From: Macrostomum lignano
Taxonomy: Eukaryota
Direction: 5' to 3'
Assembly: GCA_002269645.1 (NCBI GenBank)
Contig: NIVC01002839.1
Coordinates: 1 to 64,000 of the forward strand
Length of the DNA stretch: 64,000 bases
In this document: piece after piece, positions 18,714 to 62,327 of the stretch
Position numbering within the stretch: the stretch's first letter is position 1
Layout: the number at the start of each line of letters is the position of its first letter
Made by a program: the position numbers and the translations under genes
Notes under the pieces: model-generated
Database searches by the model: none
What the model was told of the DNA's origin: nothing
Seen by the model: only the letters and a program-made list of their open reading frames with translations

Positions 18714-25098
<6,385 letters not shown>

Positions 25099-29656: not shown

Positions 29657-31440
29657 TCAGTAATAATCCTCATCCTCATTCTGACCGCCGGCAGTGGCAG
29701 CGGCAGACTTGACCACCTCCTGGCTGCTGTACATCTCGGCCAGCTGGGCGGCCGTAGTCGCCTCCTCTGGCCGTTTGTCCTCGCGGCGGCGAACGAATCT
29801 GGGGAATCGGAGGCTGACGCCGCGGCGAGGGTCGGCCAGGCCGATGGCGGCCATGTAGGCGGGGCTGAGGCTCAGGTCGGCCGCCTTCACCTCCCAGACG
29901 ATGGCCGGGTCGAACCAGACGTCGGCATTTGAAGCGCCGCCGCAGCGGACGTAGGGCTTCGGCGCGGCGACCCGGTGCTCGGCCAGGTCGCGGGTGAACG
30001 CGTCCAGATCTTCGTCGGAGAAGCCGGTGCCGATTTTGCAGACGGTCTGGTATTCTTCGTCGTCGGGATTGTAGCAGGCCAACAGGAAGCCCCCAAGCTT
30101 GCCGGCCCGCTTCCCGGTGCCATGGTAACCACCGACAACCACGAGGTCGAGCGTGTCGCCAACACCGTCGACGTAGTCTTTTTTGAGCTTCAGCCAGCTG
30201 TGCGACCTGCGCGCGTTAAATTAATTGATTGATTTGCTTATTAGACTACTTATTAGATAAGTTCGCGTGAGTAGGATGAAGAGCTTTGTGTCTAGGAATA
30301 TTATAATAATATTACTGCCAGTAATATTAGGCAAACTGGCAGTAATATAAAACTACTGCCAAACTACTGCCAAATATAAAACTGGCAGTAATATTACTGC
30401 CAGTATGCGTGATAGGAAAAGCAGTTTAAAATCTAATACAAGCGTAAGAAGTGGATACAGTAGATAGATGAGCTCGTAGTAGATCAGGTAAATAAGATAG
30501 ATGTACATACATATGCTGACAACTCATTTTTAGTATATTGGAAGTAGACAAGTTATACAGGTGACAAGTAGACAAGGTAGACAAGGTAGACAGGTGAGAA
30601 GTAGACAAGGTAGATAGGTAAGATCAGATAGACAGGTGACAAGGTAGAAAGGTGACACGGTAGACAAGGTAGACAGGTGAGAAGTAGACAAGGTAGACAG
30701 GTGAGAAGTAGACAAGGTAGATAGGTAAGATCAGATAGACAGGTGACAAGGTAGACAGGTGGCACGGTAGACAAGGTAGACAGGTGACACGGTAGACAAG
30801 GTAGACAGGTGACACGGTAGACAAGGTAGACAGGTGACACGGTAGACAAGGTAGACAGGTGACACGGTAGACAAGGTAGACAGGTGACACGGTAGACAAA
30901 GTAGACAGGTGACACGGTAGACAAGGTAGACAGGTGACACGGTAGACAAGGTAGACAGGTGACACGGTAGACAAGGTAGACAGATGATACTGTGCGCGTA
31001 CCTCTTAGCAATCTCGTAGGTAGCCTCAGTGTCCAAGGCTTTAAGCATGAGTCCTTCGCAGTTTCCTCGAATAGCTTCATCCAGGAAGACCTGAATCTCC
31101 TCTGTGTCGGAGCAGTCCTGCCATTTGGCCAGGGCGAAGTGGCCCGCCTGCTCTGTCTCGGCAAAGTTGAACCCATCGCGCAGAACTTTGCGTCGCTGCC
31201 TTAATGATTTCTCAACCAGCGACTCGCCGTTGTAGTACAGAATGTCGAACACGAACACGCACACCTGGACTTTGATTGAGCCCGCGTCAGCGTCTTTTCG
31301 CTTCCGGGTTGTTAGCACCTGGGGGGGGGGGAGGTGCAGAAGGTGGAGTTTCTAAAGTTAAAACCGTTATTAGCTAGTTATGTAGCGCCACGAAAGTCAG
31401 GGTCACTGTGCACCCTGTGAGAGTGTGTGCGATTGCGTGC

Positions 31441-31473
<33 letters not shown>

Positions 31474-31516
31474 GCCTATCTGTCTGTCTGTCTGTCTGTC
31501 TGCCTGCCTGCCTGCC

Positions 31517-31561
<45 letters not shown>

Positions 31562-31576
31562 GCCTGCCTGCCTGCC

Positions 31577-31613
<37 letters not shown>

Positions 31614-34600
31614 GCCTATCCGTCTTTCTGTCTGTCTGCCTGCCTGTCTGTCTGTCTGTCTGTCTGCCTATCCGTCTTTCTGTCTGTCTGCCTGCCTGTC
31701 TGTCTGTCTGTCTGTCCAGCTCACCTGGAAAGGCAGTATCTGTCGCTTCTCCGTATCGAAGGCCACAGCTTCAGCATCCAATATGAAGTCAACCGGCTGA
31801 CGGCCAGCCAGCAGGTCGGGCACCCTGGCGGCGATGTCCGGGTACTTGCTGGTGTTGTTCTCCTGATTGCGCGAGTACACCCGAACGGAGCCGTCTGACA
31901 GACGGTGAATCTGAGCGCGCTCGCCGTCGTATTTGAACTCGCAGGTGAAGGCGCCGACGCTTTCGAATCGTTTGAGCACCTCTGCGACGCCGCGGGTTGG
32001 ATGGGCCAGCATGGGCTTGAGGGGCAGGCCGACTTGAAGCTGACAGCGAGACAGAAGGCCGGACAAGTCGCCGGAGCTGCAGGGGTCGAGTATGGAGTTC
32101 GAGCATTGTTATTGATCGAAACAAGATCAAATTGGCAAATCAATTTCATCTTTTCTACGTTTTTTAACAATAAAAAATTGTTATGGAAAACCAGGTGGCT
32201 CTCGTAGCTTTGCCGATAGTAATAAACTTGTTTTCTGAGAACGCAATACGTTAAATTTTCAAGAATTATTTTAATTAATTAAAAATTCTTTTTCTAAGAA
32301 ACCACTTCCCATTTTCTAATAAACCTCTTCCTGTTTTCTAAGAATCCACTTCCCGTTTTCTAAGAATCCACTTTCCGTTTTCTAATAAACCACTTCCCGT
32401 TTACTAAGAATCCACTTCCCGTTTTCTAATAAACCACTTCCCGTTTTCTAAGAATCCACTTCCCGTTTTCTAAGAATCCACTTCCCGTTTTCTAAGAATC
32501 CACTTCCCGTTTTCTAAGAATCCACTTCCCGTTTTCTAATAAACCACTTTCCGTTTTCTAAGAATCCACTTCCGTTTTCTAATAAACCACTTTCCGTTTT
32601 CTAAGAATCCACTTCCCGTTTTCTAATAAACCACTTTCCGTTTTCTAAGAATCCACTTCCCGTTTTTTAATAAACCACTTCCCGTTTTCTAAGAATCCAG
32701 TTCCCGTTTTCTAATAAACCACTTCCCGTTTTCTAAGAATCCACTTCCGTTTTCTAATAAACCACTTCCCGTTTTCTAATAAACCACTTTCCGTTTTCTA
32801 AGAATCCACTTCCCGTTTTCTAATAAACCACTTTCCGTTTTCTAAGAATCCACTTTCCGTTTTCTAATAAACCACTTTCCGTTTTCTAAGAATCCACTTC
32901 CCGTTTTCTAATAAACCACTTTCCGTTTTCTAAGAATCCACTTCCCGTTTTTTAATAAACCACTTCCCGTTTTCTAAGAATCCAGTTCCCGTTTTCTAAT
33001 AAACCACTTCCCGTTTTCTAATAAACCACTTTCCGTTTTCTAAGAATCCACTTCCCGTTTTCTAATAAACCACTTTCCGTTTTCTAAGAATCCACTTCCG
33101 TTTTCTAATAAACCACTTTCCGTTTTCTAAGAATCCACTTCCCGTTTTCTAATAAACCACTTTCCGTTTTCTAAGAATCCACTTCCCGTTTTTTAATAAA
33201 CCACTTCCCGTTTTCTAAGAATCCAGTTCCCGTTTTCTAATAAACCACTTCCCGTTTTCTAATAAACCACTTTCCGTTTTCTAAGAATCCACTTCCCGTT
33301 TTCTAATAAACCACTTTCCGTTTTCTAAGAATCCACTTTCCGTTTTCTAATAAACCACTTTCCGTTTTCTAAGAATCCACTTCCCGTTTTCTAATAAACC
33401 ACTTTCCGTTTTCTAAGAATCCACTTCCCGTTTTTAATAAACCACTTCCCGTTTTCTAAGAATCCAGTTCCCGTTTTCTAATAAACCACTTCCCGTTTTC
33501 TAATAAACCACTTTCCGTTTTCTAAGAATCCACTTTCCGTTTTCTAATAAACCACTTTCCGTTTTCTAAGAATCCACTTCCCGTTTTCTAATAAACCACT
33601 TTCCGTTTTCTAAGAATCCACTTCCCGTTTTCTAATAAACCACTTCCCGTTTTCTAAGAATCCACTTTCCGTTTGCTAAGAAACCACTTCATGTTTTTTT
33701 AGAATCCACTTCCCGTTTTCTAAGAAATTACTACTGTACTTTTGTTTTCTAAGAAACGGTTTAATTGTTTTCCAAGATCTCATCCATTAGACCCTCCACA
33801 GAAACTTCTTAAACCAATAGTCCCGCTTTCTAAGAATTCTGTTTTAACGTCTAAGAATTCAAATGCCTTAAACAGGCTCACCAGTCTTCATCCCGAGTCT
33901 CCTCAAGCAGAGCGGCAACCAGCAAGTCATAATTGGGGCAGCGGCAGTAGGCGGTCCGCACTAGCAGAGCCGCTTCGTCTTGGCGTCGTTTCCAAGAATC
34001 CGCAGATTGTCCACGCGAAGCGTCCGGAGTTTTCAAATTCGGCGACCGGACAAAAGCATGGCCGAGAGCGGACAGGACAGAGAGCTCGGCCAGGCCGATT
34101 CTGAGACGACCGGACAAAGATCGGATGAGGTATTTGGCTTCGCACTGGCGACAGGAGACTAGCAGGGATTGAATTTTTGACACCTGCGGGTTTTGTAAGA
34201 AACTTTGATGTGACAATTAACCACCACAAATAGTCAACTCTATTACTAGCTGTGAGCCTACATTAGATACCACAGCTGAGTAATTAGCTACCAAAGATAC
34301 CACAGATGAGTAATTAGCTACCAAAGATACCACAGATGAGTAATTAGCTACCAAAGATACCACAGGTAGATAATTAGCTACCATAGACACCACAGCTGAG
34401 TAAATAGCTACCAAAGATACCACAGGTAGATAATTAGCTACCATAGATACCACAGGTAGATAATTAGCTACCATAGATACCACAGCTGAGTAATTAGCTA
34501 CCAAAGATATCACAGGTAGATAATTAGCTACGATGGATACCACAGGTAGATGATTAGCTACGATGGATACCACAGGTAGATACTCGTAATTAGCTACCAT

Positions 34601-36173
34601 ATAGATACCACAGGTAGATGATTAGCTACGATGGATACCACAAGTAGATAATTAGCTATCAAAGTTACTGGTAGGTGTTAAGCACCTTCTTCTGCTGCGC
34701 GGCATTCCCAGAGAGATCGGCCACCTCGCGTAGCCGCTGAAATACGCCGGCAACAGTCAGAGGTTTCGGCTGGCACATCACAGCTTGACGCGAACGTAGC
34801 GACTCGCTCACTGCGCCAAGATCGCCGACAACTTGAGCACGTTGGCGAATTTTATCTACGGTAGAGCCGGTGCTCAAAGCCATGGCTTTTATCAGCACGG
34901 AGTCACCGACGCCCAGTTCAACAGCCTCGTAAGCTGGCGCCAACTGATTCAAGCACAGATAGACGCACGGCAGCAAATCTTTAGGGCTGAGCAGACGAAC
35001 TGAACGAAGAAAATTGCATAGCAACTCTAAGATTCTTAACCGGCCAGGCGTGGCCTCGATGGCTTCGAATGTTTTGGCCAGAGCCAAGTAGGGCACCGGC
35101 TGGCCGCTCGACCAGCTCGCATCCTCTATGGGATCGTAGCGAGCTTTGCCGGGATTATAACCCGATTCTTCCTTCGGCTGCTGCTCAGACGGCGCTTCAG
35201 CTGCTGTCTTCTTCTCCTGGTCCGATTTTTCAACCTCTTTTACCTCGGCGGCGATTTTGTTTGCCTGCTTCTTTTCCGGCTTACTTGTGGCAGATTTTTT
35301 CCTGGCTACTTTTGGTTTTGCGTCAGATTTCGGTTTTGTGTCAGATTTCGGTTTTGTGTCAGATTTCGGTTTTGTGTCAGATTTCGGTTTTGTGTCAGAT
35401 TTCGGTTTTGTGTCAGATTTCGGTTTTGTGTCAGATTTCGGTTTTGCGTCAGATTTCGGTTTTGTGTCAGATTTCGGTTTTGTGTCAGATTTCGGTTTTG
35501 TGTCAGATTTCGGTTTTGCGTCAGATTTCGGTTTTGTGTCAGATTTCGGTTTTGTGTCAGATTTCGACGGTTTCGGTTTCAATTTAGATTTGCTTTTATC
35601 GGAAGCAGATTCGGAAGCGGCAGATTCGGAAGATGACGAGGAGGAAATCATTCGGCGACGCTTGGCAGGCGGAGATGGAGAATCCTGTTGTTGCTGAGGC
35701 GACGACAAAGACTCATCGTTGGATTCAGAATCAGAGGAACCGGACTCAGACTCAGCCTTCTTTCGCTTGTTCCGCTTGTCTTGTTTATCTGGCCCATCTA
35801 AAGACAATTTATTTTCTTTCTTAATTGTCGAAGTCTCCGCTTTCGAAGTCGGCGACTTCACCTTCGCGTCGGTAGTAGTCTTTGTTGGCGGTGTGGTCGA
35901 TAAAGGGCGTCGAGTACTATCGGTGATAATAGTACTACTATCTGACTGTGCCGCAGAAGAGGCGGCAGTTTTCGAGAAGAAAGAAGTGATGGAACGTTGT
36001 TGCTGCTTCTGGCTTCCATTTTGCTGTTGCGGCATTGCGCAGGGCGAGTTTAAGATAGATAGTATTGACGTTGTTCGTACAAACAATGGGCTTGAGCAAT
36101 GAAGGAAAACAGCCGACACACCTTTCTGACGTATTAAGGATGGCGCTAGTAACGTTAATAAACGAGGTAGCAT
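29657..36173 (-). CDS. LIG1: DNA ligase I (ATP-dependent): 1002 aa from AUG1, 956 aa from AUG2 at 36035
   Basis: Exons 36173-34686, 34183-33882, 32076-31725, 31318-31002, 30206-29657, all in frame. PIP box QRSITSFF, motif [38 protein letters not shown]. Confidence 0.96.
30545..30985. repeat. 25-bp minisatellite (GTAGACAAGGTAGACAGGTGACACG) in LIG1 intron 4
   Basis: 25-aa (3 x 25 bp) periodicity in overlapping ORFs. Confidence 0.94.
31440..31716. repeat. (TGTC)n/(TGCC)n microsatellite in LIG1 intron 3
   Basis: Direct observation. Confidence 0.96.
32300..33722. repeat. 22-bp minisatellite (CCACTTCCCGTTTTCTAAGAAT / ...CTAATAAA) in LIG1 intron 2, about 65 units
   Basis: Alternating variants with larger block duplications. 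Confidence 0.96.
34235..34660. repeat. 30-bp minisatellite (AGATACCACAGGTAGATAATTAGCTACCAT) in LIG1 intron 1
   Basis: 10-aa periodicity of ORF 34217. Confidence 0.93.
35311..35565. repeat. Coding 18-bp minisatellite in LIG1 exon 1, encoding about 14 KPKSD(T/A) units
   Basis: CGGTTTTGTGTCAGATTT units, in frame within the LIG1 N-terminal region. Confidence 0.96.
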
Positions 36174-36247
36174 GAAATGTGCCGCGTTACGTTTAAGATT
36201 TTCATGATAATATAAAGCAATTACTTTACACCAATTACTTTACTTTA

Positions 36248-38405
36248 CACTTTTTCTCCCATTAACAATGTATTTTTACACCAAATGTGCACACATTCCA
36301 ATATTTAAGACCAACTAGCTCTATACCAACTAGACCAAACACATTCCAGAACCTATGACCAACTAACTGTACACATATTCTAGAATCTATGACCAACTAC
36401 ACACATTCCTGAATCTATGACCAACGAAATGTACACACATTCCTGAATCTATGACCAGCTAACTGTACACACAATCTTTAACCTATGATCAACTAACTGT
36501 ACACACATTCTAGAACCTATGATCAACTAACTGTACACACATTCTAGAACCTATGACCAACTAGCTGTACACACATTCTAGAACCTATGACCAACTAACT
36601 GTACACACATTCTAGAATCTATGACCAACTAACTGTACACATTCCAGAACCTATGATCAACTAACTATACACACATTCTAGAACCTATGACCAACTAGCT
36701 GTACACACATTCTAGAATCTATGACCAACTAACTCTACATCATAGGTAACAGAAAAACACTTTTTCTCCCATTAACAATGTACTTTTTACACCAAATGTG
36801 CACACATTCTAATATCTATGACCAACTAGCTGTACACACATTCCAGAACCTATGACCAACTAAATGTACACACATTCCAGAACCAATGACCAACTAAATG
36901 TACACACATTCCAGAACCTATGACCAACTAAATGTACACACATTCCAGAATCTATGACCAACTACACACATTCTAGAATCTATGACCAACTAGCTGTACA
37001 CACATTCTAGAACCTATGACCAACTAAATGTACACACATTCCAGAACCTATGACCAACTAAATGTACACACATTCTAGAACCTATGACCAACTAAATGTA
37101 CACACATTCCAGAATCTATGACCAACTAAATGTACACACATTCCAGAATCTATGACCAACTAAATGTACACACATTCTAGAATATATGACCAACTACACA
37201 CATTCAAGAATCTATGACCAACTAGCTGTACACACATTCTAGAATCTATGACCAACTAGCAGTACACACATTCTAGAATCTATGACCAACTAGCTGTACA
37301 CACATTCTAGAACCTATGACCAACTAGCTGTACACACATTCTAGAACCTATGACCAACTAGCTGTACACACATTCTAGAATCTATGACCAACTAGCTGTA
37401 CACACATTCTAGAACCTATGACCAACTAACTGTACACACATTTTAGAATCTATGACCAACTAGCTGTACACACATTCTAGAACCTATGACCAACTAACTG
37501 TACACACATTCTAGAACCTATGACCAACTAGCTGTACACACATTCTAGAACCTATGACCAACTAGCTGTACACACATTCTAGAACCTATGACCAACTAGC
37601 TGTACACACATTCTAGAATCTATGACCAACTAGCTGTACACAATTCTAGAACCTATGACCAACTAGCTGTACACACATTCTAGAACCTATGACCAACTAG
37701 CTGTACACACATTCTAGAATCAATGACCAACTAGCTGTACACACATTCTAGAACCTATGACCAACTAACTGTACACACATTCTAGAATCTATGACCAACT
37801 AGCTGTACACACATTCTAGAACCTATGACCAACTAACTGTACACACATTCTAGAATCTATGACCAACTAGCTGTACACACATTCTAGAACCTATGACCAA
37901 CTAGCTGTACACACATTCTAGAACCTATGACCAACTAACTGTACACACATTCTAGAATCTATGACCAACTAGCTGTACACACATTCTAGAACCTATGACC
38001 AACTAGCTGTACACACATTCTAGAACCTATGACCAACTAGCTGTACACACATTCCAGAATCTATGACCAAATAACTGTACACACATTCCAGAATCTATGA
38101 CCAACTAGCTGTACACACATTCTAGAATCTATGACCAACTAGCTGTACACACATTCTAGAACCTATGACCAACTAGCTGTACACACATTCTAGAACCTAT
38201 GACCAACTAGCTGTACACACATTCCAGAATCTATGACCAAATAACTGTACACACATTCCAGAATCTATGACCAACTAGCTGTACACACATTCTAGAACCT
38301 ATGACCAACTAACTGTACACACATTCTAGAATCTATGACCAACTAGCTGTACACACATTCTAGAATCTATGACCAACTAACTGTACATCATAGGTAACAG
38401 AAAAA
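36248..38405. repeat. 34-bp minisatellite (CTATGACCAACTAGCTGTACACACATTCTAGAAC) within a tandemly duplicated cassette upstream of LIG1
   Basis: Period 34 (37501, 37535); unique head near 36248 and 36760, unique tail near 36735 and 38385. Confidence 0.94.
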
Positions 38406-40863: not shown

Positions 40864-41709
40864 TTAATTTGCGGCGTCGGTCATTTCGGCCCCGGGAATT
40901 GTTACGGCGTCGACAGTTCCAGCGTCTCTCGATCGTCTGGCGGCCGCAGCGGACGCCGTGTTGACGTTAACGGCGTTGGTCGCCGCGTCGCTACTTGACA
41001 ATCGTTGCTGCTTTTTGCTGCTTAATTTTTTCTTACCACTTGCTAACAATTGCCGGTAGAATTCTGATCGCAGGAATCTGCCGTAGGAGTCGGACTTCAT
41101 CAGCTGAAATATGTGCTCCTCGGCCGCTTCGAATGCGTAACGATCAGCTGAGGCGGCTGTAGCGCTGGACATCCGTTTTCGGACAGCTTCGGCCACCGGG
41201 CCGGCCACGTTGACCGGCTCCGTAGCGTCCGGTCCAAGGAAGGTGTCGTAGATCCGATTGACCTCCTTGTGTACCTGACTGGCCGGGGCGTGGCGCAACC
41301 GTTGGCAGGCCTCCCAGAAGGCCAAATTCTCGGCGCTAACCTCTTTTAGTAGCCATTTCTCGAATTCCTGCCGGCCGGCCGGGTCGCGCAGCAGCTCGTG
41401 AATGCTGAAGCCCCAGCGCTTCACCCGCCTAGCCGGGACGTCCCGGGTTCGACGCTCAGATTCCCAATAGTCGGCGCTGTCCGATACCCACGGATTCTGG
41501 CTCTGGTCGGGCAGGCCGCCGCCAATGAATGCGTCAAATTCGGCATACTGCTGATAGTAGCATATGGCGCTCTCGGCCGCTTTGGACACTTTCACGCGAC
41601 TGAGAGGGGGCGGGCGTTTGGAATCGGTGCCGCGATTGCCTCATTTCTGGTATACGAACTGGGCCTCACTGTCTTAGTGTCTTAGTGTCTGGCTGTCTGT
41701 CTGTCTTAG

Positions 41710-41754
<45 letters not shown>

Positions 41755-41801
41755 TAGTGTCTTAGTGTCTGTCTTAGTGTCTTAGTGTCTTAATGTCTGC
41801 C

Positions 41802-41866
<65 letters not shown>

Positions 41867-44800
41867 TAGTGTGTCTGTCTTAGTGTGTCTGTCTTAGTGT
41901 CTGTCTTAGTGTCTGTCTGTCTGTCTTAGTGTCTGTCTGTCTGTCTGTCTTAGTGTCTGTCTTAGTGTCTGTCTTAGTGTCTGTCTGTCTTAGTGTCTGT
42001 CTGGCTGTCTGTCTGTCTGGCTGTCTTAGTGTCTGTCTGGCTGTCTGTCTGTCTGTCTGTCTTAGTGTCTGTCTGGCTGTCTGTCTGGCTGGCTGTCTGT
42101 CTGGCTGTCTGTCTTAGTGTCTTTCTGTCAGCCGGTCTGTCACCTGAGACTAACTCACCGCCTAGCCAGTGCCTGCCGCAGTTTGTCAGCCTTCGCGGCT
42201 GGCTCACACGGCTCCACGGGACTGAGCCGGCCGCTCGGTATGGGGAAGGTGGCGGGCCTGGTGGCCACCTTCTTTGGCCGTTTAGCCCGGCACAGCTTGC
42301 GCATGTCGACCTCCGTGGCCACGACTGCGCCAGGCGGCGGCCTGTAGAGCAGCCAGAAGCCGCGCTCCTGACTCTCCAGCACCATGCGCTCGAGCCGTTC
42401 CAGCTTCCTGCACAGGTTGAGAGTGGCGGATAGAATGATTAATTAGCGTGTCTGTGGTGGTGTCTTTTGCAGTATCCGTTGTAGTGTCTGTGGTTGTGTC
42501 TGTGGTAGTGTCTGGTAGTGTCTGTGGTAGTGTCTGGTAGTGTCTGGTAGTGTCTGTTGTAGTGTCTGTTGTAGTGCCTGTGGTAGTGTCTGCTGTAGTG
42601 TCTGTGGTAGTGTATGTTGTAGTGCCTGTGGTAGTGTATGTTGTAGTGCCTGTGGTAGTGTCTGGTAGTGCCTGTGGTAGTGTCTGTGGTAGTGTCTGGT
42701 AGTGTCTGTGGTAGTGTCTGGTAGTGTCTGTTGTAGTGTCTGTTGTAGTGCTTGTGGTAGTGTCTGTGGTAGTGTCTGGTAGTGTCTGTTGTAGTGTCTG
42801 TGGTAGTGTCTGTTGTAGTGTCTGTTGTAGTGTCTGTTGTAGTGCTTGTGGTAGTGTCTGTGGTAGTGTCTGGTAGTGTCTGTTGTAGTGTCTGTGGTAG
42901 TGTCTGTTGTAGTGTCTGAAAAATTTACAGACCGCTCGTAAGCAGAACAGAGGGCACTAAAAGCACAGCTGCTACCCGTGAATGCACAGAACAATTTTAT
43001 GTATCAGTGTATTTAGGAATTAGAAAATTCTTTTCAAAACTGTCCGCTGCGTGACTAACGGGCCGGTCCATTGTTCCGGACTGCGGGCCCATGATAAGCG
43101 CAGAGGCGCCGCTGTCTCTCTTGCAACCCAAACTGCCAACTCCGATGCGACACTGTGAGAACTGCTGTCAATATCAGAGCTCAACTGGGTGCGAATTTGC
43201 CTCTGATGTCTGCATATTGAGCAGCTGGAGGCGCAACTACTGATAATGTAAGCTGAGTGGCTGCTGCACCTGGGTCTGGGAGGGTGGTGGCTGAGCCTGG
43301 GGTCTGGGAGGGCGGTGGCTGAGCCTGGGGTCTGGGAGGGTGGTGGCTGAGCCTGGGGTCTGGGAGGGCGGTGGCTGAGCCTGGGTCTGGGAGGGTGGTG
43401 GCTGAGCCTGGGGTCTGGGAGGGCGGTGGCTGAGCCTGGGGTCTGGGAGGGCGGTGGATGAGCCTGGGGTCTGGGAGGGCGGTGGATGAGCCTGGGGTCT
43501 GGGAGGGCGGTGGCTGAGCCTGGGGTCTGGGAGGGCAATGGCTGAGCCTGGGGTCTGGGAGGGCGGTGGCTGAGCCTGGGGTCTGGGAGGGCGGTGGCTG
43601 AGCCTGGGGTCTGGGATGGTGGTGGCTAAGCCTGGAAGGGCGGTGGCTGAGCCTGGGGTCTGGGAGGGCGATGGCTGAGCCTGGGGTCTGGGAGGGCGAT
43701 GGCTGAGCCTGGGGTCTGGGAGGGCGGTGGCTGAGCCTTGGGTCTGGGAGGGTGGTGGCTGAGCCTTGGGTCTGGGAGGGCGGTGGCTGAGCCTGGGGTC
43801 TGGGAGGGTGGTGGCTGAGCCTTGGGTCTGGGAGGGTAGCGGTGGCCCAATAATTTGGCCTCATTTACGTGGAACTAAGATGATAGAGCTTGGTAATTCT
43901 ACAATCCAAAAGATCCATTGTAACAAAAATAAAGCCGAAATCAGCTTTACCTATCAACCTTAGCCTCGGCCTCCGCCTGCAGGTAGATAAACTCCCATTT
44001 GTGAGACAGTAGGCGCTGCAGCCTGGCCAAATTCTCAGCCTCATAATTGGCCAATTCCAATCGCTGCTTATTGAGCAGTGTTCGCTTGCACAGGTAGACA
44101 GCATAGTCAGTGTTGTCCAGCCGATCTGGTGATTTACTGGGCCACAGACAGGGCGTTTGAAATCGATAATAGGAAGAATCGTTGCGTACAATCAGAGCCG
44201 TGCCTTCGACTGGGATGATGTAACCGTGAGCTGCCAGCATGCTGGCCACGTGACAGGCCTCCTGCGGTAATGGTCGGATCGGAGAGTCATTAGTTAGCCA
44301 GTAGCTCGAATGTGTTTAGCAAATTGAATAAAAATTGACTGCTGCTACTGTTAGTAGCACTACCTACCTAGCCCAAGGCACTACCAACACTAATATTACT
44401 AAAACTACAACAAATATTACTACTAATAGTCCAAGTACTACTGCTAATAGTACACTACTAGCACTACTACTACTGCTACTAATACTACTACTACTGCTAC
44501 TACTGCCACTACTACTACTGTCTCCAAGTGAGAGGAAGCGAGAGTGAGAGAGTGAGAGGAAGCGAGAGTGAGAGAGTGAGAGGAAGCGAGAGTGAGAGAG
44601 TGAGAGGAAGCGAGAGTGAGAGAGTGAGAGGAAGCGAGAGTGAGAGGGAGTGAGAGGAAGCGAGAGTGAGAGGAAGCGAGAGTGAGAGAGTGAGAGGAAG
44701 CGAGAGTGAGAGAGTGAGAGGAAGCGAGAGTGAGAGGGAGTGAGAGGAAGCGAGAGTGAGAGGAAGCGAGAGTGAGAGAGTGAGAGGAAGCGAGAGTGAG

Positions 44801-46063
44801 AGGGAGTGAGAGGAAGCGAGAGGGAGTGACGGAGAGTGAGAGAGAGTGCGAGGAAGCGAGAGTGAGAGAGATGGAGAGGAAGCGAGAGTGAGTGAGAGGA
44901 AGCGAGAGGGAGTGACGGAGAGTGAGAGGGAGTGAGAGGAAGCGAGAGTGAGAGGGAGTGCGAGGAAGCGAGAGTGAGAGAGAGTGAGAGGAAGCGAGAG
45001 TGAGAGGGAGTGGGAGGAAGCGAGAGGGAGTGAGAGGAAGCGAGAGTGAGTGAGAGGAAGCGAGAGGGAGTGACGGAGAGTGAGAGGGAGTGCGAGGAAG
45101 CGAGAGTGAGAGGGAATGAGAGGAAGCGAGAGTGAGAGGGAGTGCGAGGAAGCGAGAGTGAGAGAGAGTGAGAGGGAATGAGAGGAAGCGAGAGTGAGAG
45201 GGAGTGCGAGGAAGCGAGAGTGAGAGGAAGCGTGAGGGAGTGATGGAGAGTGAGAGGGAGTGAGAGGAAGCGAGAGGGAGTGAGAGGAAGCGAGAGGGAG
45301 TGAAAGGAAGCGAGAGGGAGTGACGGAGAGTGAGAGGGAGTGAGAGGAAGCAAGAGTGAGAGGGAGTGAGAGGAAGCGAGAGGGAGTGACGGAGAGTGAG
45401 AGGGAGTGAGAGGAAGCGAGAGGGGGTGAGAGGAAGCGAGAGGGAGTGACGGAGAGTGAGAGGAAGCGAGAGGGAGTGACGGAGAGTGAGAGGAAGTGAG
45501 GGGAAGGGTGGTGAAGGGAGAGGAAGCGAGAGTGAGAGGGAGTGAGAAGAAGTGACTTGGAGTGAGAGAGAATGCCAGGGAGTTGAGAGGGAGAACGGAG
45601 ACAAAATAAAAAAGGCCGAGTCAGAAGACAGAGGGTAGAAAAGGAGGATATCAATTTATCGACAAGTGCAAGTTTCAAAATATTTATTGTTAGAGAAAAA
45701 TAATGACAGTAAGACTCGATATGCCCTAACCTGAGCATCCTCTGCATCGGTGTTACGCAGAAGCCAGCCGCACAGCTCCGACCCAGTGAAACAAGACGGC
45801 TGACAGGACATAAAGGATTTAACAGTGCGCACAGAGATGCCTGCGTCTTCCTGTTGTAGCCGTTCTAACAGTCGCTCTAGTCGGGACCATTGGTAAGCGT
45901 TGGGATGCGGCGGGCGGCCAGCCTCAGTGGTGACTGGTGCTGTTTTTGCTTTAGCGTGTCTGGCGTGGTGTCGTATTACTGAGGTGGATGTTGCACTGCT
46001 GCTGCTGCTGCTGCTGCCAGCACTGCCGGAGCTGCAGGCAGCCTGAGTCTGTTGCTGCTGCAT
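40864..46063 (-). CDS. RGS7: R7-family regulator of G-protein signalling (RGS6/7/9/11, EGL-10-like): DEP, DHEX, GGL and RGS domains, 542 aa
   Basis: Exons 46063-45731, 44261-43951, 42407-42159, 41599-40864. DEP VRTVKSFMSCQPSCFTG; DHEX LANYEAENLARLQ and ESQERGFW; GGL KVSKAAES..YAEFDAF..NPW; RGS EVSAENLAFW..LMKSDSYGRF. The exact paralogue cannot be assigned. Confidence 0.92.
41670..42120. repeat. (TGTC)n with TTAGTGTC interruptions in RGS intron 3
   Basis: Direct observation. Confidence 0.93.
42445..42918. repeat. 9/12-bp minisatellite (TGTGGTAGTGTC) in RGS intron 2
   Basis: Direct observation. Confidence 0.92.
43270..43842. repeat. 28-bp GC-rich minisatellite (GGCTGAGCCTGGGGTCTGGGAGGGCGGT) in RGS intron 2
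   Basis: About 20 units with G-quadruplex-type G runs. Confidence 0.95.
44342..45595. repeat. (CTA)n tract followed by a purine-rich GAGAGTGAGAGGAAGC array in RGS intron 1
   Basis: CTA tract 44342-44520; GA-rich array 44528-45595. Confidence 0.94.
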
Positions 46064-54583: not shown

Positions 54584-55153
54584 TCAGTTTTTATCCTTCT
54601 CAGGCTCTCCCTGCTCGCCAGACTCAGCAGCCTGTTCCGACTCCGACGTCCATAGCTGAAGTTTGAAAGTTTTTATGACATACGGGCAACATGACGAGCG
54701 TGCACCCTGGCGCACTTTAAGCGACATTGTCACACAACCGGCGAGAGGCATTACTGCCCATTCGCTGACTCCCCTGAGCAGGCACACAAGCACGCAGTCA
54801 TACGCACAGGCACACTCACACAGGAGTGTACAGCGGCCCTAACTTTATTTATCGTTAGGCATGTACACTTCACTGTGCCTTGGGGGTTGGCCCACAAGGA
54901 CGTTAACTGCACGTGCAGAGTCAAGCCGAGATTCTAATTTAGCCCCAAATTAATATGACTGCACTTGGAATCGAGCCTGGGCCGCTGGCACACCAGAGCC
55001 TGCGCTAGGCTACTGGGCTACGGCCCGTCTAGCAACTGATAAGCTTTGTCCAATGCCAGCATCCTGCAGCAATTATTTTCTGCTTCTGCTTCTGCCCTCC
55101 TTCTGCCTGCCTGCCTGTGTGTCTGTCTGTCAGTCAGTCAGTCAGTCTGTCTA

Positions 55154-55218
<65 letters not shown>

Positions 55219-55219
55219 G

Positions 55220-55264
<45 letters not shown>

Positions 55265-58200
55265 TAGTGTCTGTCTTAGTGTCTGTCTGTCTGTCTGTCT
55301 GTCTGCCTACCAATCAATCGACCTGTCCATCAATCTAGAATTATAATACAATCGCCACTCACAGTGAGATTGTCGCGAAGCAGCTGCATAATAAGAGTCG
55401 AGTCTTTGTACGAGTCCTCGGCAAGCTCGTCCAGGGCAGCGATAGCGTCGTCGAATGCCTTGCAGTAGCAGTAAAATTAAGACAAAAGTAACAACCAGAT
55501 TAAGAATCAGCTGATTAAAAAAGCCCAGAAGCCAACAGGTAAACAAAGGTAAACAAACCAACCTTTTTAGCCAGCGCGCAAGCAGTTGTTGGCGAATTAC
55601 GAATCTCGTAGAAGAACACGGAATAATTTAGAGCCAGGCCGAGTCGAATTGGATGAGTAGTGGCCAGCTCGCTCTCAGCGTAGCCAGTGGCGGCTTTGTA
55701 AGCCTGCTCAGAGCTGTCAACAACCGCGTCTCGTTCAACCCCGGAGGCCACCTCGGCTAGGTAGCGAAAATAGTCGCCCTTCATCTTGTAGTAGAACACC
55801 TTGGACTCGGGATTGGACGCGTTGGCAATGAGAAAGTCGTCAAGCAGGGTCTGGCGGCGGTTGGTTGAGTTAAAAATTAATGAAAGTAACAGAAAGTAAC
55901 TAGATCTGATGGATGACTTCGCGCTGGAGCAATCAATAATAAAAGGACTTGGTAAATAATTACTTTATTAGCTTCAGGAAAGGCGAGCCTCAATAGTCAA
56001 CAAGAAGACTTAAGACCAGGTAACAAACTGGGCTTTCTAATTTGAAATGCTTTCTAATTTGAATATGCTTTCTAATTTGATTCTTCTTAACTTTAATAAA
56101 ATTCAAACTTAAATGCCTTTAATGAAGATGATTGCAATCAATTTTTAGCCTTTCTTAGTCGTGGAACACCCTGGCTTTCTGCAGCTTATGGCAAAGGCTT
56201 TGCCAAAATACAGAGTGCCTGGCCAAATTTTTTTTGCTGAAAAAGTTATCCTGGACATCTACTGCAAAGTCTGTCAGCATGTACACAAGAGCTGAATGGA
56301 TGTCCATGAAGAGAAAATGGTTAGTAGTTAGTTCAACTGCTCACTTTATGATCAACTTCTCTCAATTTAGAGTGTAGTGTTGCTATGCAGTGCACCTATT
56401 GAAAGAGTATCAACTGGTATAAACATTGCTAAGGCCCTTAATGAAGCCATTGACCAGTTCAATGTATGCTAGAAGATTGTCACCATCATAACAGACAAGT
56501 GATCATAAATGTGCATAGCTCTTCAGGAACTGGAAATTCCAAGGCAGTCTTGTGTCATTTACAAACTGCAAAACTGCATCCGGGACAGTATTCTAGATGA
56601 TGCTAAGACAGCATCTGCTTATTTTTCCATCAGAGATGCAATTGTTAAATGTTGTTTAAATGTGTGTCACTTTTCTACTTCTCTAAAGGCTTATCAAGAG
56701 TGGCCAGAGCTCTGCATTGAACTTGGTACTAAGTCAATGAAGTCCCTCATTTAAGATTTGCAGACATGCTGGGACTCCTGGCTTGCCATGCTTGAGTTGT
56801 TTTGCAACCAGACTCTTGTTGTCTAAATGTGCTAGGAACAGTGCTAGATATTACTTGCTAGTAGCACTTAATCAAGCAGACTAGGATCTTATTGATGCTA
56901 TTATCTATAGCTTGAAGTCCTTCAAGGATATTGCAATTGCCATCTCTAATGTTATCTACAAGGGGTGTCCAAAAAGTAGTGGGAATTTTCAATGTAGTTC
57001 ATAGCAAGAGTCAGATACATAATTGGCGTTGACATTTCATGAAAGCGGCTTTATTAATGAATGTCCCATAAATATACTAGTTTGGGCTCTATGCCCCACT
57101 CACTTTGTCTTTTCAATTTAACTCTAATTTATAATCATTTATTATTTTCTTTACATTAGATAAAAACTATTTTGATACTATCATACTGTTTTTGCCATTT
57201 TGCATACTATGGTATATAAGTGATAGTAGATTTTAGAGTTTTTTGCAATTTGGCATGCAAACCAAAAATACTATGTATATTCAATAAAATTAAAAAGTTT
57301 CTACCTTACAGTGTGCAATAAATTCTTGTTCAGTAGTGACTTTTGAATGACGCAACTTGCACCATGTGATGCAAAGTTTGTGTTGGATAAAGAGGGATTG
57401 GGAAGAGCAAAGGGAAAAGATTGGATAGGTTGAAGCTTTTGCCTAGAGATTGGACAATATCACATTTTTAGATCTTTGAGACCTAAGATTTTATGCTTTT
57501 GATATAATTGAGAATTAATCAAGATTCAAGATTAAGCTTAATTAGCATCTAATAGGCCTATTTACACAATTCTATCTTCTATCAGTACTAATATTATTAC
57601 CTGTTAAATGTGTACAATGATGATAGTAGAAAGAAAAACAATTATATAATATTGAGCTTATAAGTAACCTGATATAAATAAAATATAAATTTGATAATAT
57701 TGTAATCACTATTTATAAATCTAGACTTTGTTTGAGATCCTAAAACCAAGATTGATTTTGAAAAAAGTGCCAAGATCTTGATGATCAAGAATGATATTGG
57801 TATCTTGTCTAACCTCTACTTTTGCCCAGTTTTAATTGTTTTTAAAGCATTTTTTAATATTAAAATGGTTGGCCAAGTGCTAGACACTGGTCAAGACACT
57901 GCTCACTAGGGCAAAAGGTGGCAAATTTTCAATGTTGCTGAGTATATATAGTAGGCCCTATATGATTTGCACTATGATATATATAGAGATAGTGGTGATG
58001 GTAATGCAAAACTCTATCCAACAAGGCCTTATTCCAAGGTATGGTTTTGACAATAAAGATATTGTAATTTCCTTAGGCCAATCATATAAAAAACCTAGAT
58101 CTATACCTAAAAAATTATATAAGAGGGTTGTTCAGAAAGTCCATGATCAATTGTGTCAAACAGATTAATAGATTAAACAAATGTAATGCTAGTCTTCCTA

Positions 58201-61200: not shown

Positions 61201-62327
61201 TCTGTCCTTTTCTGTCTGCCCTACTTTTCATGCAAAAATATCAATTTTTGTTATACATTACGGCTACGGTTATGGCAAATTACGGTTACGGACTTTTTTA
61301 GCCCGTAATGACGGCAAAATTCGGCTACGGAAGTTGCTTCTTTCTTACGGCTACGGTTACGGTTACGGAGGTCAAAACTCGTGGCGGCGGAACACTAGAA
61401 AATAAAGAAATACAATACACGCTTCTACAAATCACACTGTCACACCATTTAGTAGGCACAACAGAAAGTTACAAAATATTTGGAAAGAAAGAAATTAAAG
61501 CAATTGATGCTCATATGCAAGCAATAAAGTTTACAATTTTAATTCATTATTAAAGTTCATTAGTAAAAAGTCATTACATTTGCATGATCATTGTTATAAA
61601 CAAAGAGATTAATTAGGCATTTATCTAGGTAAATTCAAATACATTCATAATGTTGTAACTTCTCTTTAGACTTATATTTTTGTTCTTTTTTTGCATCTTT
61701 GGTCATTGACATTGCCATTAATGTTAGGCCTAACAATGAATTTGTCATTGACATTAGGCCTAATTTTAAACACAAATTTGTTAATTTATTAATTCAAAAA
61801 ATCTTAATGGCAGTCTGTTAAGGATCTGTTAACATTCATGAAAAATCTTAATGCTTATTAATGGATTAGACCTAACGCTTATTAACAGACTGGTGCCCAA
61901 TGGCAATGCTGCCTATCAGAAGGCATATCACTATTCGCTATCAACATTGATTAAAATGCCCCTAAAAATAAAAAAATCAACCTACCAGAACTTCCTTGCA
62001 GATCTTCTGAAGCTCGCTCTCAATCTTAAGACGATATTCTTTTCCCATGGCAAGTTTGGCGTTGGACTTGTCATTTGCACTCTCACTCTTGCTTTCAATG
62101 CTGGAAATTACTCTCCAGGATGAACGACGAGCTCCAACGACATTTTTGTAAGCAACGGAGAGAAGGTTTCGTTCTTCGTTGCCAAGCTCTTGGCCCTTCT
62201 CGGTAACGGACTTCATAGCTTCTGCCATGTCATCGTACCTTTCAGCTTGTTCAGCTAACTTTGCAATATGAACAAGATCATCGCGAGAATAAGAACCAGA
62301 ATTCAGCCATTCAGTAAAAGAAGCCAT
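54584..62327 (-). CDS. 14-3-3: 14-3-3 protein, 265 aa
   Basis: Exons 62327-61986, 55850-55563, 55458-55363 (AAG acceptor), 54655-54584. [67 protein letters not shown]. Confidence 0.97.
54957..55029 (-). mobile_element. 73-nt tRNA-like head (tRNA-derived SINE or tRNA pseudogene) in 14-3-3 intron 3
   Basis: Minus strand GACGGGCCG-TAGCCCAGTAG (A box) ... CTGGTGTGCCAG hairpin ... GGCTCGATTCC (B box) ... TGCAGTC; stems only partly paired. Confidence 0.45.
55095..55306. repeat. (TCTG)n microsatellite in 14-3-3 intron 3
   Basis: Direct observation. Confidence 0.95.
56128..56956 (+). pseudogene. Decayed hAT (Ac/ZBED-like) transposase
   Basis: Manual translation gives [75 protein letters not shown], with many stops and frameshifts. 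Confidence 0.8.
56957..57400 (+). mobile_element. Probable mariner terminal fragment interrupting the hAT transposase
   Basis: TA followed by CAAGGGGTGTCCAAAAAGTAG, a mariner-like TIR; weak AKFV-type motif near 57370. Confidence 0.4.
57444..57818. mobile_element. hAT-type MITE (375 bp); partial relative near 51305-51530
   Basis: Left TIR TAGAGATTGGACAA; right TIR reverse complement TAGAGGTTAGACAA; exact 8-bp TSD CTTTTGCC at 57436-57443 and 57819-57826. Confidence 0.8.
58120..58960 (-). pseudogene. Decayed mariner transposase with its 3' TIR
   Basis: Minus-strand segments [78 protein letters not shown] (stop 58200-58198); TIR-like GAGGGTTGTTCAGAAAGT at 58123. Confidence 0.8.
59253..61911. 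mobile_element. Putative older hAT-type non-autonomous element (about 2.66 kb) hosting the 60260 element
   Basis: Left end TAGTGTTGGGCAC; right end reverse complement CAGCATT(GCCATT)GGGCAC; direct repeat CCTATCAG at 59245-59252 and 61912-61919; AAAATCTTAA near both ends. Confidence 0.45.
60260..61397. mobile_element. Young hAT-type non-autonomous element (1138 bp) with (T/C)TACGG subterminal repeats
   Basis: Left TIR TAGTGTTCTGCCG; right TIR reverse complement TAGTGTTCCGCCG; exact 8-bp TSD GAAAATAA at 60252-60259 and 61398-61405. Confidence 0.9.

Follow-up and report, generated by a model that had tools for sequence, protein, structure and literature searches.

A DNA ligase 1 gene of Macrostomum lignano with two in-frame start codons and a candidate mitochondrial presequence

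The LIG1 locus

The DNA analyzed here is a stretch of 64,000 nucleotides from the flatworm Macrostomum lignano (assembly GCA_002269645.1, contig NIVC01002839.1, positions 1 to 64,000), referred to below as the window. It contains a complete five-exon gene for DNA ligase 1 (LIG1) on the minus strand (36173..29657). The coding sequence can be read from either of two start codons in the same frame, ATG1 and ATG2, and the peptide encoded between them is a candidate mitochondrial presequence. The exon model was derived from tblastn alignments with orthologues together with splice sites, and all introns are of the GT-AG type. Translation from ATG1 yields a predicted protein of 1002 residues, and translation from ATG2 one of 956. 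The product carries the three Pfam ligase domains DNA_ligase_A_N, A_M and A_C (E-values of 1e-46, 3e-63 and 3e-23, respectively) and scores 766 bits against human LIG1, 155 bits against LIG3 and 123 bits against LIG4. The gene had been called LIG1 in an earlier description made from the letters of the DNA without database searches (the sequence-only reading), and the domains and scores bear this out.

Exon 1 is 98% identical to the UniRef entry A0A1I8HIP1 ("DNA ligase 1, Macrostomum lignano"). This public model (568 aa) is without the N-terminus and omits exon 3, which encodes the catalytic lysine of the KYDGER motif; unlike A0A1I8HIP1, the window supports a complete LIG1 protein of 956 or 1002 residues. 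Between the PIP box, the PCNA-binding motif of the protein, and the DNA-binding domain, exon 1 encodes a disordered, Ser/Lys-rich linker with a (KSDTKP)n repeat. The repeat is the minus-strand translation of an 18-bp tandem repeat (14.3 copies, 97% matches, 35310-35566). A0A1I8HIP1 begins right after it, which suggests an assembly break at this point. The features of the locus are collected in Table 1.

Table 1. Features of the LIG1 gene and of the DNA upstream of it, in window coordinates
Feature	Position	Strand	Remarks
LIG1 exon 1	34686..36173	-	Extension, PIP box, linker, start of DNA-binding domain
LIG1 exon 2	33882..34183	-	
LIG1 exon 3	31725..32076	-	Contains adenylation motif KYDGER
LIG1 exon 4	31002..31318	-	
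LIG1 exon 5	29657..30206	-	OB-fold domain and stop codon
ATG1, upstream in-frame start	36171..36173	-	Context catttcATGc, T at -3, C at +4
N-terminal extension of 46 codons	36036..36173	-	Candidate mitochondrial presequence
ATG2	36033..36035	-	Likely start of nuclear PCNA-binding isoform; context tgcgcaATGc, G at -3
PIP box QRSITSFF	35976..35999	-	Residues 59-66 from ATG1; form Qxx[ILM]xxFF
Pyrimidine tract ttttccttcattgctcAAG	36091..36109	-	Candidate acceptor of the sequence-only reading; ends AAG
CGCGGCACATTT, possible core promoter/start site	36175..36186	-	5-7 nt before ATG1; motif match only
TATA-like TATATTA	36208..36214	-	Motif match only; initiator-like CACATTT follows about 34 nt downstream
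Out-of-frame upstream open reading frame overlapping ATG1	36155..36205	-	ATG at 36205, A at -3, 16 codons, stop at 36157-36155
34-bp tandem array	36339..38387	.	61 copies; immediately upstream of LIG1

Two in-frame start codons and the encoded extension

The distance from ATG1 to ATG2 is 138 nucleotides (nt), exactly 46 codons in the same frame. Upstream of ATG1 the frame remains open until a TAA at 36242, and between that stop and ATG1 it has no ATG, GTG or TTG. The interval between the two starts, checked in every frame, contains no further ATG. Judged by the base at -3 (T versus G), the context of ATG1 appears weaker than that of ATG2.

The extension contains three Arg, one Lys, one His, 10 Leu and eight Ser residues and is devoid of Asp and Glu, giving a net charge of +4. 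It carries an R-x|x-S site of the R-2 type at R33, as well as phi-x-x-phi-phi motifs of the TOM20 type at residues 2, 5 and 10. Such a composition is compatible with a mitochondrial presequence. The sequence-only reading had described both start codons with their -3 positions, the 46-residue extension and its composition, all of which we find as reported. It had also placed the PIP box directly after ATG2. The motif QRSITSFF is indeed present and is the same as that of many animal LIG1 proteins; it begins 12 residues after Met47, so that "directly" was a loose description.

Peptide, codon and chance evidence

Several observations weigh against translation of the extension as a presequence, some of them in the peptide and others in its codons, its expectation by chance and its relatives. 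The best 18-residue hydrophobic moment of the extension is 0.33, compared with 0.42-0.66 for textbook presequences (the yardstick being four sequences), and Arg accounts for just 6.5% of its residues. One stretch of 10 residues, with a mean Kyte-Doolittle value of 2.2, equals the core of a secretory signal peptide in hydrophobicity. This core, and the place of ATG1 as the first ATG after an in-frame stop, would suit a single long isoform made from ATG1, in which the 46 residues form a non-targeting tail or a secretory-type signal and the PIP box is internal. A hydrophobic N-terminus would, however, misroute a replicative nuclear ligase; moreover, the PIP box occupies the extreme N-terminus in almost all animal LIG1 proteins, and ATG1 has the weaker context. 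We therefore regard a single long isoform as very unlikely.

The codon evidence bears on another explanation, namely that ATG1 is fortuitous and that promoter or 5′ leader sequence, open in frame by accident, fills the 138 nt before ATG2. In that case ATG1 would be untranscribed or skipped, the sole functional product would start at ATG2, and the resemblance to a presequence would stem from T/C-rich, G-poor DNA. The GC content at third codon positions is 0.37 in the extension, as against 0.43-0.82 along the LIG1 coding sequence, and the upstream flank has a GC content of 0.31. TTA and CTA make up eight of the 10 Leu codons in the extension, compared with 11 of 79 in the coding sequence. The Leu codons alone were rejected as decisive, given that the true 5′ end of the coding sequence likewise uses TTA and TTG.

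In a log-likelihood test of LIG1 codons against AT-rich non-coding 3-mers, the scores of the extension in frames 0, 1 and 2 are -14.6, -24.5 and -10.5 bits, respectively, while all 45-codon windows after ATG2 are positive. A frame-specific coding signal is thus absent from the extension, frame 0 performing no better than frame 2. The test of synonymous choice, for which windows were left out of training, gives -10 to -13 bits for the extension, under the score of every 45-codon coding window. The lowest of these coding windows adjoins the extension (codons 47-91) and is itself negative, at -4 to -5 bits; the test is therefore weak at this end of the gene, which tempers the case for a fortuitous ATG1. 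Overall, the codon evidence leans toward the extension being non-coding.

Three nulls were used to estimate how often such an arrangement arises by chance: the 300 nt ahead of ATG2 after dinucleotide shuffling, the 135 nt of the extension itself shuffled likewise, and real open reading frames (ORFs) of the window. Among the 300-nt shuffles, an in-frame upstream ATG followed by at least 20 open codons occurs in 5.1%, a rate that leaves room for a fortuitous ATG1. The fraction falls to 1.8% when the absence of acidic residues and a net charge of at least +3 are also imposed, and to 0.45% when no other ATG is allowed either. The rarity of the full joint pattern (0.45-1.8%) speaks against a fortuitous origin, as does the combination of a weak first ATG, a better second one and an ATG-free interval, a combination that dual-targeted genes display.

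The 135-nt shuffles point the other way. The extension DNA has the composition T45 C37 A33 G23; 10% of its shuffles remain open and 21% are free of ATG. Of those that stay open, 25% match or exceed the real peptide in presequence likeness, judged by the lack of acidic residues, a net charge of +4 or more and a hydrophobic moment no lower than that of the real peptide. By this measure the presequence look is a product of base composition. Real AT-rich ORFs in the window that begin with ATG give a different picture: 8% are without acidic residues, and none of 50 satisfies all three criteria. Whether the pattern exceeds chance depends on the null, with the 300-nt and real-ORF nulls opposing the 135-nt null. 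As for the proposal of the sequence-only reading that the extension is a presequence, its composition fits, but the likeness is no better than expected from composition-matched chance and the hydrophobic moment is low.

Relatives of the extension

A HMMER scan of 1.84 billion representative sequences retrieved 2644 relatives, none of which aligns to residues 1-46 of the extension; the set is clustered at 50%, and close Macrostomum relatives may be hidden within it. A word-index search with residues 1-139 returned no match, a null that is uninformative because the method is unreliable for short N-terminal queries and missed the LIG1 of Anticarsia even with the first 135 residues of that protein as the query. 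Exact-protein look-ups with the ATG1 ORF, the ATG2 ORF and the UniRef model found no record.

Most animal LIG1 proteins start at the Met of the PIP box, with the N-terminus M(S/A)QRSIxSFF. The order of extension, Met and PIP box found in M. lignano also appears in three other animal LIG1 models, all of them predictions, with extensions of 32-51 residues. The extension of Anticarsia gemmatalis (RefSeq XP_075985103) has 40 residues, of which none is acidic and five are basic. That of Plutella xylostella (CAG9131317) has 51 residues and shares one exon with the PIP box, and that of Trichuris suis (KFD45518) has 32 residues, three of them acidic. The two moth extensions have zero or one acidic and five basic residues. 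The three extensions show no detectable similarity to one another (E = 1.5 for the two moths) or to that of M. lignano. At the Plutella locus (L001 3850-4160), a canonical E2F site, TTTGCCGCGC, precedes ATG1 by about 140 bp. Two out-of-frame ATGs lie between its two LIG1 starts, unlike the ATG-free interval in M. lignano. Among about 28 animal LIG1 models with full N-termini, three or four carry an extension. This is near the 5% chance rate and is in keeping with a fortuitous ATG1; we therefore treat the animal extensions as context and not as proof.

Upstream DNA and possible promoter

Sequence related to the 34-bp array continues to about 36247, leaving about 75 bp of unique DNA ahead of ATG1. 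Within this short segment, GCGGCACA, a part of CGCGGCACATTT, agrees with the reverse E2F consensus GCGSSAAA at seven of eight positions and overlaps an initiator-like CACATT. Together with the TATA-like element, these motifs indicate a possible transcription start 5-7 nt before ATG1. Provided that they are genuine, a start at this site would exclude the upstream ORF and would make ATG1 cap-proximal and leaky. The same E2F-like and initiator-like element abuts ATG1, and transcription could consequently begin at or after it, as expected if ATG1 is fortuitous. On the evidence as a whole, we consider a fortuitous ATG1 a serious contender, though one to which we give less than an even chance.

The upstream ORF that overlaps ATG1 out of frame has a good start context and is relevant only to transcripts that begin upstream of 36205. 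In such transcripts it would divert ribosomes from ATG1 and permit re-initiation at ATG2. We also note a 50-bp insert that does not conform to the array unit (aatgtgtgcacatttggtgtaaaaa..gggagaaaaagtgt) and is present twice, near 36810 and near 36300.

Splicing between the start codons

ATG1 might also be removed from the transcript, either by trans-splicing or by cis-splicing from an upstream non-coding exon to an acceptor located between the two start codons. If removal were constant, ATG1 would be irrelevant; if occasional, it would provide the isoform switch envisaged in the sequence-only reading. The M. lignano spliced leader, CGGTCTCTTACTGCGAAGACTCAATTTATTGCATG, is 35 nt long and is received by about 30% of genes, conserved and neoblast genes being enriched among them (PMC8629364), a point in favor of trans-splicing.

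The sequence-only reading had singled out a pyrimidine tract ending in CAAG as a splice or trans-splice acceptor. The tract is present between the two start codons (36109-36091) and consists of 80% pyrimidines, but its end does not match YTNCAG, the top acceptor motif of the species, found at about 44% of known sites (PMC8629364). No YTNCAG occurs on the minus strand in 36420-35950. Since the motif accounts for just about 44% of known sites, its absence weakens the case for trans-splicing and does not exclude it. The cis acceptors of LIG1 are CAG in all four cases, whereas AAG closes the best tract. A further difficulty is that the ATG of the leader, if joined at CAAG, would be out of frame and would create a 53-codon ORF across ATG2. 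For these reasons, splicing of the leader at CAAG was not retained as the preferred reading. An AG at 36126 would keep the terminal ATG of the leader in the LIG1 frame, with a pyrimidine tract that is only moderate.

A further consideration is the gene upstream of LIG1 on the same strand, which encodes a DEP/RGS domain protein (RGS7/EGL-10-like, 40864-46063, minus) and has repeat-filled introns. The gap between LIG1 and this gene, whose stop lies near 40864, is 4.7 kb and shrinks to about 1.5 kb when tandem repeats are subtracted. This arrangement would favor trans-splicing, but even this shortened distance is above the 1-kb limit for operons applied to M. lignano (PMC8629364), and an operon with the RGS gene was rejected on that criterion. 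Trans-splicing of LIG1 is possible but unsupported, and the removal of ATG1 by either kind of splicing seems to us improbable.

Elsewhere in the window, a 14-3-3 protein gene is represented by two exons on the minus strand (55515-55799 and 61977-62327). Microsatellites of the (GTCT/CAGA)n type are found at 24000-24450, 31400-31800, 41686-41990 and 55053-55346. They give rise to long spurious ORFs on both strands (SVCLSVCL..., DRQTDRQT...), and some of them lie in LIG1 introns.

Comparison with known ligases

The arrangement of the two AUGs matches that documented for yeast Cdc9 and Arabidopsis LIG1 (PMC4488670, PMC3457046, PMC12838351); the sequence-only reading had pointed to yeast Cdc9 and plant LIG1. 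For both Cdc9 and Arabidopsis LIG1, the first of two in-frame AUGs gives the mitochondrial ligase and the second the nuclear form (PMC4488670, PMC3457046, PMC12838351). CDC9 of Saccharomyces cerevisiae and M. lignano LIG1 are alike in having two in-frame AUGs, a short extension and a PCNA-binding motif soon after the second Met. The yeast presequence, at 23 residues, is shorter, richer in Arg (17% versus 6.5%) and of higher hydrophobic moment (0.42 versus 0.33). Its function has been shown by experiment, whereas that of the M. lignano extension is putative.

Arabidopsis LIG1 has two in-frame AUGs on the same transcripts, and their context and the 5′ leader's length set the ratio of mitochondrial to nuclear protein (PMC3457046). 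The mechanism was shown by GFP fusions and in vitro translation (PMC3457046, summarising Sunderland et al. 2006). The possibly very short leader before ATG1 of M. lignano would fit a mechanism based on leader length. The plant mechanism has been demonstrated, while the M. lignano transcription start is a guess from TATA-, E2F- and initiator-like motifs.

In vertebrates, about 10% of initiations on LIG3-alpha take place at an upstream AUG, which supplies a mitochondrial targeting sequence (PMC4488670, PMC3315315). Dual targeting in M. lignano would employ the same trick, an upstream AUG that adds mitochondrial targeting to a nuclear ligase, in a separate ligase family, as the scores against human LIG1 and LIG3 indicate. 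Outside vertebrates the distribution of LIG3 is patchy (PMC4488670). Searches of the literature yielded nothing on LIG3 in flatworms and nothing usable on nematode lig-1 in mitochondria, and entries for LIG1 or LIG3 are absent from the supplements of M. lignano transcriptome papers.

Proposed mechanism and significance

The layout proven for Cdc9 and Arabidopsis LIG1, combined with a joint pattern that appears uncommon by chance, argues for dual targeting of M. lignano LIG1 by alternative initiation at ATG1 and ATG2. We put the probability of this interpretation at roughly 0.45. One reading frame of a single gene would then encode both proteins. Ribosomes starting at the weak ATG1 would produce the 1002-residue precursor, whose first 34-46 residues or so would act as the mitochondrial presequence, and the imported long form would serve to seal mitochondrial DNA. 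Ribosomes passing over ATG1 would find no ATG before ATG2 and would make the 956-residue nuclear form, in which the PIP box, near the free N-terminus, would bind PCNA. The most likely switch would be leaky scanning, possibly aided by a very short leader, if the initiator/E2F-like element located 5-7 nt ahead of ATG1 is where transcripts start. Alternatively, transcription starts on either side of ATG1 could assist the switch.

Every mitochondrion requires a DNA ligase. Fungi and plants obtain theirs from LIG1 by way of an upstream AUG, and vertebrates obtain theirs from LIG3 in like manner. To our knowledge, the mitochondrial ligase is rarely known for animal lineages without LIG3. A tentative and broader proposal is that LIG1, not LIG3, serves as the mitochondrial ligase in some animals. 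M. lignano LIG1 would be dual-targeted from two AUGs on one mRNA, and either a weak AUG1 close to the cap or the overlapping upstream ORF would determine the ratio of the two forms; the arrangement would recur in moths and whipworms, and the handover from LIG1 to LIG3 would be patchy across Metazoa. We hold this wider scheme to be less likely than not.

Should the extension prove fortuitous, it would serve as a warning that T/C-rich leaders readily translate into presequence-like peptides. If dual targeting is true, it would represent an animal instance of an already known mechanism, and it would matter more if M. lignano is without LIG3. Confirmation of the LIG1 presequence would bring with it a corrected gene model, with the N-terminus and the catalytic exon restored. 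Because M. lignano can be made transgenic, confirmation would also offer an animal example open to experiment, and it would assist in dating the handover from LIG1 to LIG3.

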